The translations under genes and the position numbers were made by a program. Shown one piece after another: positions 35,860-41,628 of a DNA stretch of 64,000 bases (position 1 is the first letter of the stretch; every line of letters starts with the position of its first letter). Under the pieces are notes generated by a model. That model was not told the origin of the DNA. It was given only the letters and a program-made list of their open reading frames with translations, and did no database searches. The stretch lies in the sequence record OQ603353.1. The stretch is one strand, 5' to 3'.

Positions 35860-36585
35860 ATGACCATGAGCACGGAAACCGTTCTGATCGGTCTTGGCTG
35901 TCTACCTGATAACGCTCAAGCCCTTGAGGGGGCGTGCATTCGGTACGGCATCGAGACTACGTGGCACAAGTCCATTTTCATCGGACAGATCGCTGTAGAA
36001 ACAGGTGGCTTCCGTGCCACCCGCGAAAGCATGAATTACAGCGTTGAAGGTCTTATCAATGGTTTTGGCCGTCACCGTATCAGTGTGGCGGACGCTCAGA
36101 AATACGGGCGTATTGATAAGGTCGTGAACGGCAAGAAAACTGTTATCCGAGCAGCTAACCAAGTAGCCATCGCCAACATCCTGTACGGCGGTGAGTGGGG
36201 ACGCAAGAATTTGGGTAATACCGAGTTGAACGACGGATGGAATTTCAGGGGCGGCGGTGACAAGCAATTGACTGGCCGCGCTAATTGGACCAACTACAGC
36301 ATGGACACCTATGGTGACTTGCGTGTGCTGGAGAATCCTACTCTGATCGAACTCTATCCCGACAAGAGCTACACTGCTGGTTGGTTCTGGCAACGCAACA
36401 AGCTGGGTGACATTGCTTCGCAATATGTGCTCCCTGATGATCCCAAATCTCCGGAGTACGATTCCATCCTGCGTTCTACTGTTACGGTAGTTACCAAGAA
36501 GGTCAACGGCGGTGACAAGGGTTTGGAGGATCGCATCATGTGGACGAAAAAGGCCCTGCAAGGCTTCAATCAACTCGTACTGTGA
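35860..36585 (+). CDS. GH19-family endolysin
   Basis: FIGQIAVETGGF, RESMNYS, DGWNFRGGG..QLTGRANW, VTKKVNGG.KGLEDR. Confidence 0.92.
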   Translation: MTMSTETVLIGLGCLPDNAQALEGACIRYGIETTWHKSIFIGQIAVETGGFRATRESMNYSVEGLINGFGRHRISVADAQKYGRIDKVVNGKKTVIRAANQVAIANILYGGEWGRKNLGNTELNDGWNFRGGGDKQLTGRANWTNYSMDTYGDLRVLENPTLIELYPDKSYTAGWFWQRNKLGDIASQYVLPDDPKSPEYDSILRSTVTVVTKKVNGGDKGLEDRIMWTKKALQGFNQLVL

Positions 36586-36591
36586 CTAACG

Positions 36592-36620
36592 TGCTGGGAA
36601 CATTAGTTCCCAGCATTCTT
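36592..36620 (+). terminator. Intrinsic terminator after endolysin
   Basis: TGCTGGGAAC-ATTA-GTTCCCAGCA then TTCTT. Confidence 0.75.
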
Positions 36621-36637
36621 CGTATAGGCCCCTGACT

Positions 36638-37003
36638 ATGAGAATTTTAGCCAATAGCACCAAGGTACGCGAAGGGGATTTCTCCAAGCTTCGTATCCCA
36701 AAAGCAAAGCAAGTCAAGGTGCACACGCATGACGCATGGCAGGGCCGAAAGAATCATCACCTGTCCTACGATTTTACTGCACCTAGCACTAGCATGCACC
36801 ATCAAGCAGTCGGGAAGGCCATCCATGAGCATCTTGCGTCTCATGGCCTGTCTCCACACAAACGCTCCAGTTCGGGCAACACGGTTACCATTGAGTACAG
36901 GCACCCATCGGGTCACCGCGCCGTTGTCAAGATGAAGCGTACAAAGCTCGCAGGCGATCCCAACCATCACGTGGAATTCGCCGTAGAGAAGACCGGTAAC
37001 TAA
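36638..37003 (+). CDS. His/Lys-rich small protein
   Basis: 121 aa; HEHLASHGL..EYRHP module resembles repeats in 47320. Confidence 0.55.
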   Translation: MRILANSTKVREGDFSKLRIPKAKQVKVHTHDAWQGRKNHHLSYDFTAPSTSMHHQAVGKAIHEHLASHGLSPHKRSSSGNTVTIEYRHPSGHRAVVKMKRTKLAGDPNHHVEFAVEKTGN

Positions 37004-37023
37004 CACTTCAATGAGGTAACGTC

Positions 37024-37365
37024 ATGCCCTTGTGGTTGACTGCATGGTTTGCGAAAATGTGGGCCAAGTGCTCGCAGTATGTCATTGCCGCTGGCTCCAT
37101 ATTGGCGGCAATTGCTGGTATCTTCCTGTACGGTCGCTTCAAGGGTAAGTCCGCCGCCGATGCAAAGCATGCGGAGCAGGATGCGAAACGAATTGAGGCT
37201 GAAACCAAGATCGTTGAGAAGATCGACCAAGCTCACGAATCTACCCGTGAGCAGGTCGAGGAAAAAATCGAGAAAATCCCTGCTCCAACTACGGATCCTA
37301 ACGAGACAGTTAGGGTGGGGGATGCACCTAAAGATTCGGCCGCAGGCAAATTGAGGGGCTGGTAA
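37024..37365 (+). CDS. Inner-membrane spanin (Rz-like)
   Basis: N-terminal TM (VIAAGSILAAIAGIFLYG) then charged coiled coil; overlaps a lipoprotein gene. Confidence 0.8.
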   Translation: MPLWLTAWFAKMWAKCSQYVIAAGSILAAIAGIFLYGRFKGKSAADAKHAEQDAKRIEAETKIVEKIDQAHESTREQVEEKIEKIPAPTTDPNETVRVGDAPKDSAAGKLRGW

Positions 37366-37592
37366 TGAAAACTCTCCTGATTATCGCCATCGCCTTACTT
37401 GCAGGCTGCGCAACTACTCCACAAGTGGTGGCTCAAACCGACATTTGCGCTGGCTGGAAGGCCATCAAGGTCAACGAAAACGACGAATTCACGGATGGAA
37501 CTGCCAAGCAGATTCTAGCGCACAATTGTCAAGGCGCAGCCTTGAAGTGCTGGGCCTATCCGAGGAATGATCCCCAAATTTGTGAACGCTAA
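37365..37592 (+). CDS. Outer-membrane spanin lipoprotein (Rz1-like)
   Basis: MKTLLIIAIALLAGC lipobox; additional Cys; overlapped-spanin arrangement. Confidence 0.82.
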   Translation: MKTLLIIAIALLAGCATTPQVVAQTDICAGWKAIKVNENDEFTDGTAKQILAHNCQGAALKCWAYPRNDPQICER

Positions 37593-37601
37593 GAGGTAAC
37601 A

Positions 37602-39986
37602 ATGCCGCTGCCCACTTCCATCCAACCCATCATTGAGAATACTCCGGACATTCTCAAAGCATGTGTTGAAGTCTATCAGTCCATGTCTCTGCTACAGGAC
37701 CGGGGCTTCATGTTCTTGAACGAGCAGATTGAATTGCTCACGTCTACGGGTCAGGTGGCACACGTCACCACTGCGTATGGTACTCAGGTTGAGTTGCCCA
37801 CGTATCATACTCTGGCAGCCACCTCGAACGCCTCTACGGAATTGGTGCAGCAGTTTCAGCGCCAAATCTACGACGTGTTCACTAGCAACAACCCGACGGT
37901 AATCATTAGTGACGGTCTTGGTAACGACACTCAGGTGATCGGCTATCAGACCATGAACGACAAGGTTAACGCTACGTCGGACGTGGCTTCTATCGCCAAC
38001 ACCAACGCGCTCAACGCGCTGGGTAAGGCCACCGAAGCGCTGAACCGTGTTACCAACTCCGAGCTCAACGCCAACGTGGCTTTGGCGAACGGCACACCAC
38101 CCACCTATCAGACGCGTTCGGTTCTCGATACTGTTACGACGATGCAACGCAATAGTATCGCCTACGTGATCGCTGATCCGGTTCCCACCAACAACACCAT
38201 CTACCAGTACAACGGTACTGCATGGACTCCTCAGTATGATCGGCTGCTGACCGCCCTAGGTAGTCCGCGTGGCTATCTGGCCCCACTCACGGGCGCTATC
38301 TACCGTACCTATCAGAGCAAGCTAGAATCACTGGTTACTCCTGAAGACGTGGGGGCCAAGGGTGACGGCACTACTGATGACGGTCCCGCCTTCATCGCCG
38401 CCGCTGCGAACGGGCGCCTGATTGTGCTGTCCCCCAACAAGACCTACCGTATCACCTCCAACGCCACTGTAGGCAGCATCATGCCTAATGGCTCCAAGAT
38501 TTCCATCGGTCCGGGCGCTACCCTGACTTTTGATGGCCTGATCGTGGACGATGCTACGGTTGTGTTTACGGGTGAGGGCAACGCCGTCAGCAGCACTAGC
38601 GTCTACAGCGTTGGCTGGTTCGCAGGTGATAGCTTTAACGCCAAGTGGCTCGCCATGAAGCGTGGTTTCACCCAGCAGGTAGTCAAGTACGTCACGCTGC
38701 CGATGCCGCACCGCACCGATCCTGCGGCAACTACCGCAGCTTCGGACGGTCAGGCACGTTGGAAGCTTACGGACTCTGTGGTCTTCAACAATACGGAATC
38801 TAACCTGATCGTCAATGCGCTGGGCGAATTCCTTGTGGACCAGTCCGCCTCGCTGTCGGCAGGTGCTTTCATCCTTGGCGAGCTGACTGCCCCCTCCAGC
38901 ATCAACTTCCCGAACGGCTTGCGCGTCCTGTGTAACGGTAGTGCAACTTATGGTCTGCGCGTTCGCGGCGGTAGCAGCATCAGTTTTGAAGAACTACTGG
39001 TTCTGGACAGTGCAACCAACTCCGGCATCCTGTGGGACAACTATAACGGCCCGAGTCATCGCATTAGCTTCGACCGCGTGCGTATCGACGGCTTTGGTGT
39101 GGCAGGCGTAACTATCCAGCCGCAGGGTGGCCCGAGCTATCCGAACCAATCGCCTCCGATCACTTCGTGTTCGATCAATTCGCTGCAAACGCGAGGCGGT
39201 CGTAGCGGCTGCACGAACTTCGTCAAGATCGCGGGTAACGTGGATGGCCTGACCATCACCAACGTCCTTGAAGATCGTCCGTCGGGTAGCCTGCTGTTCG
39301 ACTGGAGCGATTCCATGTTCTCGCTGACTAACACTCAGTACGGCACGATTGGTCGCTCCGGTTTGGAGATTGGTCACATTCAGGCGACCAGCACCCAGCT
39401 GCCCATCATCCGTGCGTTCGACAGCACTTCCGCTGCTGACCCTGCGAATGGCAAGATCACGTTCTCGGTAGAGCACATCTATCAGGCGTATCAGCAGAAC
39501 ATCGTTCCGGTCATCATGGAATACTCGAAGAACTGCACCATCGGACGTATCAACGCAGGACGCCCCACCTCTAGTCAGGAAGTGCTTGTCCGTATCTTCC
39601 GCGACTGCGAGGGTATTTCTCTGACCGGTACACACTACACCGCTGTTCGTAGTCAGGCCCTGCGTACTCAGTTTGACGGACGCTTCGGCATGGTGGACGT
39701 GGTGCAGCAGAACTCTGCGATCTTCACGGATCTAAACACTGCGGCACTGACGTTCAAGTTTGACCTAATCTGCCTCACCTCCGCGTCTACTTACGCTTCG
39801 GGTTGGGCAGGCGCCAACGCTCTCGATATTCCCACGTCGCTGACCAAGAATATCAACGTTGCCCAGGGTCCGCTGGAAGGAACGACCGGCCCTGAAAGCA
39901 CCATCAGCATCAGTGCTGCGGAAAACAAGTTCTTTGTGGAAAACCGAACCGGACAGAATCAGCTCGTTGCGGTTCTCATGTCCTAA
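37602..39986 (+). CDS. Tailspike/depolymerase with pectate-lyase-like beta-helix
   Basis: 794 aa; TPEDVGAKGDGTTDDGPAFIAAA cap motif followed by right-handed beta-helix-type repeats. Confidence 0.85.
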   Translation: MPLPTSIQPIIENTPDILKACVEVYQSMSLLQDRGFMFLNEQIELLTSTGQVAHVTTAYGTQVELPTYHTLAATSNASTELVQQFQRQIYDVFTSNNPTVIISDGLGNDTQVIGYQTMNDKVNATSDVASIANTNALNALGKATEALNRVTNSELNANVALANGTPPTYQTRSVLDTVTTMQRNSIAYVIADPVPTNNTIYQYNGTAWTPQYDRLLTALGSPRGYLAPLTGAIYRTYQSKLESLVTPEDVGAKGDGTTDDGPAFIAAAANGRLIVLSPNKTYRITSNATVGSIMPNGSKISIGPGATLTFDGLIVDDATVVFTGEGNAVSSTSVYSVGWFAGDSFNAKWLAMKRGFTQQVVKYVTLPMPHRTDPAATTAASDGQARWKLTDSVVFNNTESNLIVNALGEFLVDQSASLSAGAFILGELTAPSSINFPNGLRVLCNGSATYGLRVRGGSSISFEELLVLDSATNSGILWDNYNGPSHRISFDRVRIDGFGVAGVTIQPQGGPSYPNQSPPITSCSINSLQTRGGRSGCTNFVKIAGNVDGLTITNVLEDRPSGSLLFDWSDSMFSLTNTQYGTIGRSGLEIGHIQATSTQLPIIRAFDSTSAADPANGKITFSVEHIYQAYQQNIVPVIMEYSKNCTIGRINAGRPTSSQEVLVRIFRDCEGISLTGTHYTAVRSQALRTQFDGRFGMVDVVQQNSAIFTDLNTAALTFKFDLICLTSASTYASGWAGANALDIPTSLTKNINVAQGPLEGTTGPESTISISAAENKFFVENRTGQNQLVAVLMS

Positions 39987-40027
39987 CGTGGTGGTCACAT
40001 GGACGTGACCCTTTCTTGAGGTGCACA

Positions 40028-40171
40028 ATGAAGCTATTGGTATTGATCGGAGTGCTAGCTCTGGCAGGCTGCAACTCGATGCCTACGCCGTCCAAGCCGC
40101 TGAACACTGGGGACGAAACGCAACCTCCTCCGGGTTGTGTGGAACTACGTAAGCAAGGAGGCAAGTGCTAA
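40028..40171 (+). CDS. 47-aa lipoprotein (not in ORF track)
   Basis: GAGGTG RBS; MKLLVLIGVLALAGC lipobox; ends PPPGCVELRKQGGKC; stop overlaps next ATG (TAATG). Confidence 0.75.
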   Translation: MKLLVLIGVLALAGCNSMPTPSKPLNTGDETQPPPGCVELRKQGGKC

Positions 40172-40593
40172 TGGCCCTGTCGGTACAAGATTACACGGCA
40201 CTGCGACGCATCCACTCCAAGGCAATGTCTGCCTTCAAGTATGTGTCGGACAAAACCAAATGGGGACTGGTAGAGTATTGGGAACCCGAGGACGTACTGT
40301 TCCCCGTAGGTGCTAGGTTTACGGGAGATTGCGAAGAATTCGCTAGAGTGTGCATGCAGGAAAGCATCAAGGCCGGTTACAAAGCACGGCTCGTTGCATG
40401 CCTTACTGAAGGTGGCGAAGGCCACTGCATCTGTGAGGTGGCGGATGAGGAAGAAACGGGATCGTTCTTCTTAGACAACCGCAAGACCAACATCGTTACC
40501 AAACTGGGATTGACTGGCTACAAGTTCTACAGCGTGTCGCCTTGGAATCCCCAATTTAGCGAGACTCGGCCGTGGAGGCTGGTCAAGGAGTAA
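40171..40593 (+). CDS. Transglutaminase-like cysteine proteinase (BTLCP/DUF920, LapG-like) catalytic domain
   Basis: YVSD..WG..EYW, GDCEEFA (Cys), GEGHC (His), FLDNR (Asp); AAGGAGG RBS; no signal peptide. Confidence 0.85.
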   Translation: MALSVQDYTALRRIHSKAMSAFKYVSDKTKWGLVEYWEPEDVLFPVGARFTGDCEEFARVCMQESIKAGYKARLVACLTEGGEGHCICEVADEEETGSFFLDNRKTNIVTKLGLTGYKFYSVSPWNPQFSETRPWRLVKE

Positions 40594-40596
40594 GGT

Positions 40597-40815
40597 ATGT
40601 CGCTGGTTCCAACCAACACACCACGGCAAAAGATCGCTGCCAAATACAATCCTAGAATCACTAGGATTCGGAAGCAGAAAGCGCAACTGCGCAAGTCCTT
40701 GAAGAACGCCAATACGGCACAGCGCAAGGTCATCGGTAACAAGATTCTGGCCATGAGTAATCAGATCGCTTTGCTTACGGTACAGCGCAACCGCGAGTTG
40801 CAGCGCCTCCGATAA
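40597..40815 (+). CDS. Small highly basic helical protein
   Basis: 72 aa, Arg/Lys-rich, TAAGGT RBS. Confidence 0.6.
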   Translation: MSLVPTNTPRQKIAAKYNPRITRIRKQKAQLRKSLKNANTAQRKVIGNKILAMSNQIALLTVQRNRELQRLR

Positions 40816-40818
40816 GCC

Positions 40819-40853
40819 AAAAGAAAAGGGCCACCCCTTTCGGAGCGGCCCTT
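40819..40853 (-). terminator. Terminator for the minus-strand operon
   Basis: AAGGGCC...GGCCCTT stem preceded on + by AAAAGAAAA (U-tract on the minus strand). Confidence 0.6.
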
Positions 40854-40896
40854 ATGTTGTTGGGTTGGACTGCAAGGATGCTAGTGTCCAGGAGTT

Positions 40897-40925
40897 AAGG
40901 GGAGCACGATGCTCCCCTTCTTTTT
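40897..40925 (+). terminator. Terminator for the plus-strand operon
   Basis: AAGGGGAGCA-CGA-TGCTCCCCTT then CTTTTT. Confidence 0.75.
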
Positions 40926-40926
40926 A

Positions 40927-41628
40927 TCAGCCCTCGTACTCGTCAGCGTCAACCGGAGACGACTGCTTACGCAGCATCTGGCGTTCAGCCCAGCGGGCCA
41001 GCTTATCGAAGTTCTTGATCTTGCTGGCTTCCTCGAAGACATAACGGTAGTCGGCCGCAGACAGACGTTCATCGCCACAGTTCTTGATGGACGCGTGCAC
41101 TGCATCCATGTTCATATCCTTGGCCTGAACCATGATGTTCAAGATGACCGGATTGATCTGATTGGCGATCACCACGTCGTTCTCTGCATCCGGGTTGCGA
41201 ATCGGCTTGCGGTTACGATCACCCAGCGCTGCCGGGGTCTTGCCACTGCCACCGTTCTCAATGCCCATCGACGCATTGATGACCTCGTTACGGATGTTCT
41301 GAATACGTGCATGCTCCGCACGTGCATCGCTGCGCTCCATGAACTTGTTGGCCGCTTCCGGGTCGATGATGAGCAGCAGACCGCTGTTGACCGCACGCTT
41401 GAACGGAGCCGAATTGACGATCACGTCACGGTCGCCGATTTCAACAAGGTTCTGAGGAATGAAGGAAGCTTCAATCATCAGTCGGTTGTTGTCGTCGATG
41501 TGCAGGGACACGCGCGAGCTATCCGAGTGTGCATTCACCGCCATGCGGTTTACGTTCAGCACCCACAGTTCGTCGTGCTCCGAACGAATGGCGTCCATGA
41601 TGGTGATGGCGTGGTTTTCAAGACTCAT
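40927..41628 (-). CDS. Hypothetical protein
   Basis: 233 aa, GGAG RBS, tandem stops; part of a three-gene minus-strand block. Confidence 0.75.
   Translation of the reverse strand: MSLENHAITIMDAIRSEHDELWVLNVNRMAVNAHSDSSRVSLHIDDNNRLMIEASFIPQNLVEIGDRDVIVNSAPFKRAVNSGLLLIIDPEAANKFMERSDARAEHARIQNIRNEVINASMGIENGGSGKTPAALGDRNRKPIRNPDAENDVVIANQINPVILNIMVQAKDMNMDAVHASIKNCGDERLSAADYRYVFEEASKIKNFDKLARWAERQMLRKQSSPVDADEYEG

Follow-up and report, generated by a model that had tools for sequence, protein, structure and literature searches.

A BTLCP-family protease gene divided between a small lipoprotein gene and a signal-less catalytic gene in phages

In a 64,000-nucleotide stretch of sequence record OQ603353.1, from a Xanthomonas jumbo phage (hereafter, the window), two overlapping open reading frames (ORFs), both labelled as hypothetical protein in GenBank, together correspond to what is elsewhere a single lipoprotein of the BTLCP family (Pfam Peptidase_C93). 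ORF1 encodes a small lipoprotein precursor, while ORF2 encodes the catalytic domain (Table 1). Very probably, a lipoprotein BTLCP has here undergone a conserved fission, with anchor and neck being encoded by one gene and the catalytic part by another, and with the two genes giving rise to two coupled polypeptides. As such, the split is a new architectural variant of a known protease family, one that is widespread and has been overlooked. Indeed, no paper addressing a split BTLCP, its partner ORF or an export signal supplied in trans was found in the literature.

The two ORFs and their one-piece relatives

Examination of ORF2 revealed what is, by profile and model, a complete BTLCP catalytic domain with a predicted Cys-His-Asp triad and no signal peptide. 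The translated sequence matched Pfam PF06035 (Peptidase_C93) with a score of 36.5 bits (cut-off 27; E = 5.2e-9) over profile positions 34-144 of 162, with the predicted triad comprising Cys54 within GDCE (40330-40332), His85 within GH (40423-40425) and Asp102 within LDN (40474-40476). These residues are invariant in the close ORF2 family, as are the Asp and Glu beside the catalytic Cys, and among the split loci described below D-C-E and the His were found in 31 of 31 cases and the Asp in 30 of 31. An AlphaFold2 (AF2) model of ORF2, built on nine family members, presented a mean predicted local distance difference test (pLDDT) score of 80.5, with the loop comprising residues 34-47 being poorly modelled. 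The N-terminal export signal expected of BTLCPs on the same polypeptide is missing from ORF2, the N-terminus of which contains no hydrophobic core (maximum 11-residue hydropathy of 0.68, as compared to 3.19 for ORF1); signal and lipobox instead sit on ORF1. Across loci, the corresponding maxima for ORF2 N-termini do not exceed 1.71 (median 0.49), while those of the ORF1s are never below 2.17.

Two additional Cys residues (positions 86 and 88 in ORF2) follow the catalytic His in a G-H-C-I/L-C-E motif that is invariant in the jumbo-phage clade and missing from the one-piece periplasmic relatives. Two close relatives of ORF2 (P0035 and P0038) have kept the rest of the domain without the catalytic Cys and are possible pseudo-enzymes, while a third relative (P0033; 461 residues) contains an intein-like insertion of ~300 residues placed exactly at the catalytic Cys, with GDC before the insertion and CEEFA after it.

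The best structural matches to the ORF2 model in the Protein Data Bank (PDB) were to LapG of Pseudomonas fluorescens and Legionella pneumophila (4u65_E, 4fgp, 4fgq and 4fgo), with template modelling scores of ~0.63-0.68 on the query and 17-18% sequence identity. Like ORF2, LapG presents a transglutaminase-like fold and a Cys-His-Asp triad in which acidic residues flank the catalytic Cys. Because ORF2 is recognized by Pfam and by fold, is matched only marginally by LapG at the level of sequence, and failed to match NF045674, the LapG equivalog model of NCBIfam (cut-off 320 bits), at E <= 0.01, ORF2 is by these profile and model comparisons a BTLCP and not a LapG orthologue. The description of ORF2 as LapG-like in an earlier note on this DNA, prepared from the letters alone, accordingly stands for fold and family, and not for orthology. 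The one-piece relative P0101, introduced below, scored only 20 bits against the same equivalog model. LapG is a periplasmic enzyme in which calcium ions close to the active site are functionally important (PMC4359373), and its substrate is the adhesin LapA (PMC3032545). It differs from ORF2 in being a soluble protein that brings a signal peptide of its own and is under LapD control. An orthologue of LapG would be expected to work with a LapD-type receptor and with a LapA-type adhesin bearing a di-alanine cleavage site; neither type of gene was seen to adjoin the pair in the neighbourhoods considered, either in the window or in related loci.

ORF1 begins with a hydrophobic signal peptide that leads into an L-A-G-C lipobox (Cys15; 40070-40072), followed by a Pro-rich linker and then a C-terminal Cys-x9-Cys loop, the second Cys of which is the last residue before the stop. 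Alignment of 30 ORF1s showed no variation at the lipobox Cys, Gly36, Cys37 or Cys47, while Pro24, Pro33, Pro34, Arg41 and Gly44 are kept in at least 90% of the sequences. The spacing between the two loop Cys residues could be determined in 29 loci and amounts to nine residues in 25 of these. Pairwise ratios of non-synonymous to synonymous substitution (dN/dS) were between 0.13 and 0.49, and all synonymous codons occur at the invariant Gly and Cys columns. By these codon-level measures, ORF1 is a protein-coding gene under purifying selection. In Escherichia coli, lipoprotein sorting depends on whether Asp is found at position +2. No ORF1 among the loci tabulated carries Asp at this position, such that, by the E. 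coli rule, an outer membrane location is indicated.

When considered alone, ORF1 matched no family in Pfam, NCBIfam or PADLOC, and a word-indexed protein search returned only the sequence itself. Against the PHROG spanin families, the best match (E = 4e-4) covered the signal peptide and lipobox only. The idea that ORF1 serves as an Rz1-like outer-membrane spanin was rejected, with a much better spanin pair being found upstream in the window (Table 1). Likewise, similarity to phrog_1119 (Cor type; E = 0.0075) was limited to residues 1-21, whereas a Cor/Llp-type superinfection-exclusion lipoprotein would be expected to show similarity beyond the signal peptide.

The origin of the pair became apparent upon comparison with longer relatives. 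When 1.84 billion representative proteins were scanned in full using HMMER and the ORF2 profile, 616 matches at E <= 0.001 were obtained. Among the best 150 of these, most are 120-150 residues long and begin at the domain, while the longer sequences include single-chain lipoproteins in which a lipobox, P.PF and PP.GC...R.RGG..C immediately precede the catalytic domain, such as P0101 (RPPRGCLELRERGGMYC) and P0109 (NPPKGCRDFRSRGGHC). In some other long matches, the Pro-Gly part is kept and the cysteines are gone. P0101 is found on a bacterial contig beside chemotaxis genes and P0109 on a phage-like contig; when P0101 served as query in a search for more one-piece relatives, only one was obtained. 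When the ORF1 family was aligned to the one-piece family using hhalign, ORF1 residues 3-47 were placed on P0101 residues 23-67 (probability 98.7%; E = 1.7e-16), whereas ORF2 residues 9-140 were placed on P0101 residues 69-188 (probability 99.9%; E = 2.3e-31). The two matching parts of P0101 are thus adjoining and do not overlap, bearing out the proposal of the earlier note that a BTLCP gene is here split in two.

The closest relatives of the pair are, accordingly, the one-piece lipoprotein BTLCPs (P0101, P0109, P0122, P0126 and P0141, from metagenomes), which are uncharacterised members of Peptidase_C93. As in the pair, they present a lipobox, a P.PF...PP.GC...R.RGG..C neck and a catalytic domain in that order, yet do so within one polypeptide, whereas the pair assigns anchor and enzyme to separate genes. 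As part of a single polypeptide, the enzyme of a one-piece BTLCP is exported under a signal of its own. AF2 modelled the domain of P0101 with confidence and the tether as disordered, with the Cys-containing motif forming a short helix and turn into the first domain helix (pLDDT ~65-78). As modelled, the ORF1-equivalent part looks like an anchor plus a stapled neck and not an element of the core fold. The N-terminal P-x-G...C...C segment which the earlier note had described for many BTLCPs is real, albeit only in this lipoprotein subfamily; the Cys-loop lipoprotein module of ORF1 does not align to LapG, and the family profile matches LapG (E = 1.4e-9) only from the first domain helix onward.

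The junction and distribution of the split

The position of the ORF2 start relative to the ORF1 stop was determined in 32 loci. As had been read earlier in the window, where a lipobox (LAGC) ORF and a GDCE/GH/LDN triad-containing gene are indeed both present, ORF1 stop and ORF2 start share one base (TAATG), and the same one-nucleotide overlap was found in 17 loci. Elsewhere, the overlap amounts to 7 nt (seven loci), 4 nt (two loci), or 11, 17 or 29 nt (one locus each), while spacers of 1 nt (two loci) or 2 nt (one locus) separate the two ORFs in the remainder, giving an overall range of -29 to +2 nt. ORF2 lies in the -1 frame relative to ORF1 in 27 loci and in the +1 frame in five. In every locus ORF2 has a start codon of its own (ATG, GTG or TTG), and in 30 of the 32 a Shine-Dalgarno (SD)-like purine run is found 4-18 nt upstream of that start, usually as GGAGG spelled by Arg-Gly-Gly codons. 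In the window, the AAGGAGG previously assigned to ORF2 was confirmed (Table 1). Since ORF2 has its own start and an SD-like sequence written into the Arg/Lys-Gly-Gly codons of ORF1, the two ORFs would be tightly coupled, with coupled but separate translation offering the simplest reading of the junction.

To describe how widely the split is distributed, the pair was sought in phage records and in metagenomic sequences. Positions 37000-41000 of the window are 99.6-100% identical to five near-identical phage records of ~227 kb, namely Xanthomonas phages Ep026, PhiXhv-12, PhiXhv-15 and PhiXhv-16 and 'Erwinia' phage Ep032, all of which contain the split pair. The records of Ep032 and Ep026 (OQ603359.1, 'Erwinia phage Ep032'; OQ603353.1, 'Xanthomonas phage Ep026') are each 100% identical to this part of the window and carry differing host names. 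Relatives of ORF2 with 45-46% identity were found in the Xanthomonas jumbo phages LucasX and RTH11, where a lipoprotein ORF of 53-54 residues ending in PPPGCVDLRKRGGAC lies immediately upstream of ORF2 and overlaps its start by one base. In both phages, the genomic context differs from that of the window: a thymidylate kinase gene and virion structural genes flank the pair, which lies on the strand opposite to the structural genes, with an annotated terminator appearing directly after the pair in LucasX. The same split arrangement was seen in four metagenomic loci (L004, L006, L008 and L009), in three of which the small lipoprotein ORF had been missed by gene calling (L006:3813-4001, L008:4919-5098 and L009:123-299). 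Three proteins of 183-189 residues with a twin-arginine-like N-terminus (P0007, P0009 and P0010) were considered as exported one-piece forms and rejected; in each, gene calling had placed the start of ORF2 too far upstream, such that the predicted protein reads through ORF1 out of frame.

When IMG/VR was scanned using the ORF2 family profile, 41 loci were obtained. In 30 of these, contained in sequences ranging from jumbo contigs to contigs of a few kb, an upstream lipoprotein ORF ending in ...PP.GC.(E/D).R.RGG.C is found at the ORF2 start. The other 11 comprise five one-piece proteins with a signal peptide or lipobox (including L046, with a signal peptide), two proteins with an N-terminal hydrophobic segment, two in which the domain lies inside a larger ORF, one without an upstream partner (L044) and one at a contig edge. 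Fused and split relatives, between which the earlier note had sought to decide, thus both exist, and L044 alone among the 41 lacks both ORF1 and a signal for export or anchoring within the same protein. The pair was also detected in a Neptuniibacter metagenome-assembled genome in a contig scan seeded with a narrower ORF1 alignment; the second match of that scan was false, lying out of frame in a dehydrogenase gene.

The median identity of ORF2 among split loci is 34%, indicating that the split arrangement is old. Moreover, distances between ORF1s and between ORF2s are correlated (Mantel r = 0.56, a value reached in 0 of 2000 permutations), in support of the two having been inherited together. 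The recurrence of the pair in more than 30 independent loci is far beyond chance.

Possible modes of action of the pair

The distribution of the split poses a puzzle of localisation, namely how or whether ORF1 and ORF2 meet in the cell envelope. As a tentative proposal, ORF1 would serve as an outer-membrane anchor with a disulfide loop, while ORF2 would remain in the cytoplasm until lysis and then act in the envelope next to or on ORF1. According to this scheme, ORF1 would leave the cytoplasm via Sec, undergo lipidation and be sorted to the outer membrane, with its two loop Cys residues being oxidised in the periplasm. ORF2 would meanwhile build up in the cytoplasm, where calcium is scarce, and would reach the envelope only upon breach of the inner membrane at the end of infection, much like a soluble endolysin. 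There, next to the ORF1 anchor or bound to it, ORF2 may act on a protein of the periplasm or outer membrane, with family precedent suggesting as candidate substrates a retained adhesin, as for LapG, or components of the capsule or exopolysaccharide machinery, as for HvyA. The roles put forward in the earlier note, namely the shedding of host adhesins or receptors, superinfection exclusion and a place in the virion, are speculative, as is physical contact between the two products. With ORF2 reaching the envelope only at this point, the split would delay an envelope protease until lysis. The main support for the proposal is distributional: in the 41 IMG/VR loci, an export or anchor signal is provided either in cis (five plus two loci) or in trans, as ORF1 (30 loci). 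The proposal is also in line with the lack of a signal in ORF2 and, in the window, with the position of the pair after endolysin and spanin genes. That an outer-membrane ORF1 and a cytoplasmic ORF2 meet at lysis is something that we infer.

Such a pair may constitute a compartment-gated two-piece enzyme, the anchor and neck of which travel early to the outer membrane and the catalytic half of which joins only when the holin opens the inner membrane. In this more specific form the idea is on the doubtful side. In a still stranger variant, ORF1 would aid ORF2 in crossing the membrane, with the export signal being supplied in trans. Several observations weigh against a delayed meeting of the two products at the envelope. 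Some phages encode ordinary exported one-piece BTLCPs, such that delayed action is not a universal need. ORF2 was modelled as a self-contained domain, and the ORF1-equivalent segment of the one-piece model, predicted with low-to-moderate confidence, corresponds to a flexible tether and short helix; fold complementation is therefore not indicated by the models. The extra conserved Cys residues beside the catalytic His of ORF2 are no less compatible with a cytoplasmic location than with a periplasmic one. Finally, the linkage of the pair to lysis genes is not general, given its heterogeneous neighbours.

Some of these same observations agree with an alternative in which the two proteins assumed separate jobs after fission. 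ORF2 would then be an enzyme of the cytoplasm directed at a new target inside the cell, ORF1 would act as a small, stand-alone outer-membrane lipoprotein that, for example, blocks or decoys a component of the envelope, and adjacency would be maintained by dependence of ORF2 translation on that of ORF1. The absence of an export signal from an enzyme that models as a complete domain on its own, the Cys residues gained around the catalytic His in the jumbo-phage clade, the purifying selection acting on ORF1 as a protein and the failure of its equivalent to pack confidently on the domain of the one-piece model all agree with such divergence. The same would apply to the weak similarity of ORF1 to PHROG lipoproteins of the Cor and Rz1 types, were this not confined to the signal peptide and lipobox. 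Separate roles are nonetheless rather unlikely, given that the 30 signal-less BTLCPs of the IMG/VR set have ORF1 directly upstream and only L044 lacks both partner and signal, and given that the characterised members of the family act in the periplasm (PMC4241560, PMC4359373). The co-variation of ORF1 and ORF2 distances also speaks against separate roles, although co-inheritance alone could yield this result. It is improbable that ORF2 is instead packaged in the virion and ejected so as to work in the periplasm of the next host, with ORF1 acting in the producing cell. This route is suggested by the presence of the BTLCP domain in large tail-fibre-like proteins (L038 and P0150) or together with a Peptidase_M15-like region (P0146), by the position of the pair after a tailspike-like gene in the window and by its proximity to virion structural genes in LucasX and RTH11. 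In the latter two, however, the pair and the structural genes are on opposite strands, and in LucasX a predicted terminator directly follows the pair. Moreover, neighbourhoods are heterogeneous, the papers describing the LucasX and PhiXhv phages report no virion proteome and nothing on these genes, and the constant attachment of ORF1 would be left unexplained.

Two further explanations concern the junction itself. Were a programmed frameshift to occur near the ORF1 stop, a one-piece exported lipoprotein protease would be generated, either alone or beside the two separate products. Such fusion would both solve the problem of export and reproduce the one-piece architecture, and is in line with the predominance of the -1 frame and with the strong SD-like element just upstream, SD-like elements being known stimulators of frameshifting. 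Still, overlaps of the TAATG and ATGCTAA types produce the -1 relation by themselves, ORF2 is in the +1 frame in five loci, three loci have spacers in place of overlaps, and the window contains no slippery heptamer. In several loci, a stop in the ORF2 frame is found just 6-27 nt before the start, leaving almost no room for a shift. In the window, the nearest such stop (TAA, 40150-40152) lies 18 nt, or six codons, before the ATG and not 15 nt, as given in the earlier note. With no heptamer, no constant frame, variable spacing and a start codon for every ORF2, a programmed -1 frameshift pair was rejected and recoding is highly improbable, that note having likewise thought a frameshift fusion unlikely. 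Least credible is that the split reflects a sequencing error or a recently broken single gene. The two ORFs together do resemble a single gene found elsewhere, and gene callers sometimes miss ORF1 or place the ORF2 start too far upstream. However, artefact or decay is already contradicted by the presence of the split in five independent phage records and more than 30 loci as divergent as noted above, in which ORF1 is under purifying selection and start codons, SD-like sequences and catalytic residues are conserved.

Genomic surroundings, related systems and implications

The features of the window that surround the pair are listed in Table 1. The pair comes after endolysin and spanin genes that form part of a lysis cassette spanning 35860-37592. 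As the outer-membrane spanin lipoprotein is encoded by a separate gene, ORF1 is the second small lipoprotein of the region.

Table 1. Features of the window in the region of the ORF1-ORF2 pair.
Feature	Position	Strand	Basis or remark
ORF1, 47-residue lipoprotein precursor	40028-40171 (ATG 40028, TAA 40169-40171)	+	ORF scan
ORF2, 140-residue BTLCP (Peptidase_C93) catalytic domain without signal	40171-40593 (ATG 40171, stop 40591-40593)	+	Pfam, AF2
Shine-Dalgarno-like AAGGAGG for ORF2, 9 nt 5' of ATG	40155-40161	+	Within Lys-Gln-Gly-Gly codons of ORF1
Conserved tail motif PPPGCVELRKQGGKC (ORF1 residues 33-47)	40124-40168	+	ORF1 alignment and one-piece homology
Terminator-like hairpin (6-bp stem, then CTTTCTT) between tailspike-like gene and ORF1	39993-40010	+	Consensus scan
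72-residue basic ORF directly 3' of ORF2	40597-40815	+	No family match
Terminator-like hairpins where + and - strand genes converge	40823-40919	Both	Consensus scan
GH19-type endolysin	35860-36585
Uncharacterised 121-residue ORF	36638-37003
Inner-membrane spanin	37024-37365		PHROG; spanin-pair E values 6e-10 and 8e-14
Outer-membrane spanin lipoprotein, separate gene	37365-37592		PHROG; spanin-pair E values 6e-10 and 8e-14
794-residue gene product with weak tailspike similarity	37602-39986		PHROG, PDB

The earlier note had placed the pair directly after a depolymerase tailspike. While the pair does follow a 794-residue gene product, similarity of this protein to tailspikes is weak, being seen as a PHROG tail spike match over residues 218-288 (5e-11) and in comparison with the PDB tailspikes 5w6f and 6nw9 (E = 1.2e-3), with no match in Pfam. 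Nor is a link to tailspikes general, as the pair is found in quite different neighbourhoods elsewhere. The hairpin between this gene and ORF1, detected by consensus scan only and so weak evidence, may mark the upstream boundary of a small cassette. On the other side, the 72-residue ORF may belong to the unit as a third gene, albeit in this phage lineage alone. A 70-residue ORF occupies the same place after the pair in the syntenic contig L004 (4424-4636), while no counterpart follows the pair in LucasX or RTH11.

In 25 smaller viral contigs, the neighbours of the pair include genes encoding reverse transcriptase, ribonucleotide reductase, MazG-like pyrophosphatase and tail proteins, as well as a few spanin or endolysin genes; when consistent linkage of the pair to lysis genes was tested, none was found. 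Such heterogeneity points to the pair being a mobile two-gene cassette, which fits a report that phage BTLCP genes are common and move between viral clusters (PMC11283719). In three viral contigs, the gene immediately before the pair encodes a reverse transcriptase (Pfam RVT_1; L020:319-1368, L028:316-1371 and L032:18-875) and may be part of a diversity-generating retroelement. Other architectures were also noted, with the BTLCP domain being fused to a C-terminal Peptidase_M15-like region in P0146 (291 residues) and found within large tail-fibre-like or repeat proteins in P0150 (731 residues) and L038:1054-2010. These offer hints that some phage BTLCPs are virion-borne or cell-wall-directed.

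Among characterised systems, HvyA of Caulobacter crescentus is a BTLCP that blocks capsulation and so changes phage susceptibility (PMC4241560). It belongs to the same Pfam family as does ORF2, is periplasmic and needs its triad for function (PMC4241560). Set beside ORF2 by description, HvyA differs from the pair in being a one-piece protein of 272 residues with a Sec signal and no lipobox. Fold relatives are also encoded by Caulobacter phages. In a single-virus survey of river water, BTLCP was the most frequently identified auxiliary gene (PMC11283719), and genes of Shewanella phages 3/49, 1/4 and 1/40 are annotated as encoding BTLCP-like proteins. Unlike the situation described here, the river-virome and Shewanella phage reports treat the BTLCP gene as a single unit, with no mention of a partner lipoprotein ORF. 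Finally, the pairing of a transglutaminase-like Cys protease with a very small, separate partner is seen in vasohibin and SVBP (PMC4866520, PMC7543661), an analogy of principle only. The vasohibin-SVBP structures gave weak fold matches only, the system is eukaryotic, and SVBP is unrelated to ORF1 and has no lipid anchor.

In 30 of the 41 viral loci matched by the ORF2 profile, the BTLCP is in fact encoded by two genes, the smaller of which is often missed or mis-called by gene callers, such that annotation of these genes should change. In the split BTLCP family, export signal and membrane anchor have been kept under selection on a polypeptide different from that of the enzyme. Should the two halves meet again, they would define a new way of timing an envelope enzyme, and compartment gating, if true, would time the action of the protease on the envelope, or on adhesins or receptors in cell debris, to lysis. 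Should they not, a periplasmic protease family would have moved to the cytoplasm, with the former anchor having become independent. Either outcome matters for understanding how phages deal with structures at the host surface, such as adhesins, capsule and xanthan-like exopolysaccharide, and is of interest for those Xanthomonas phages that are currently under characterisation with plant protection in view.

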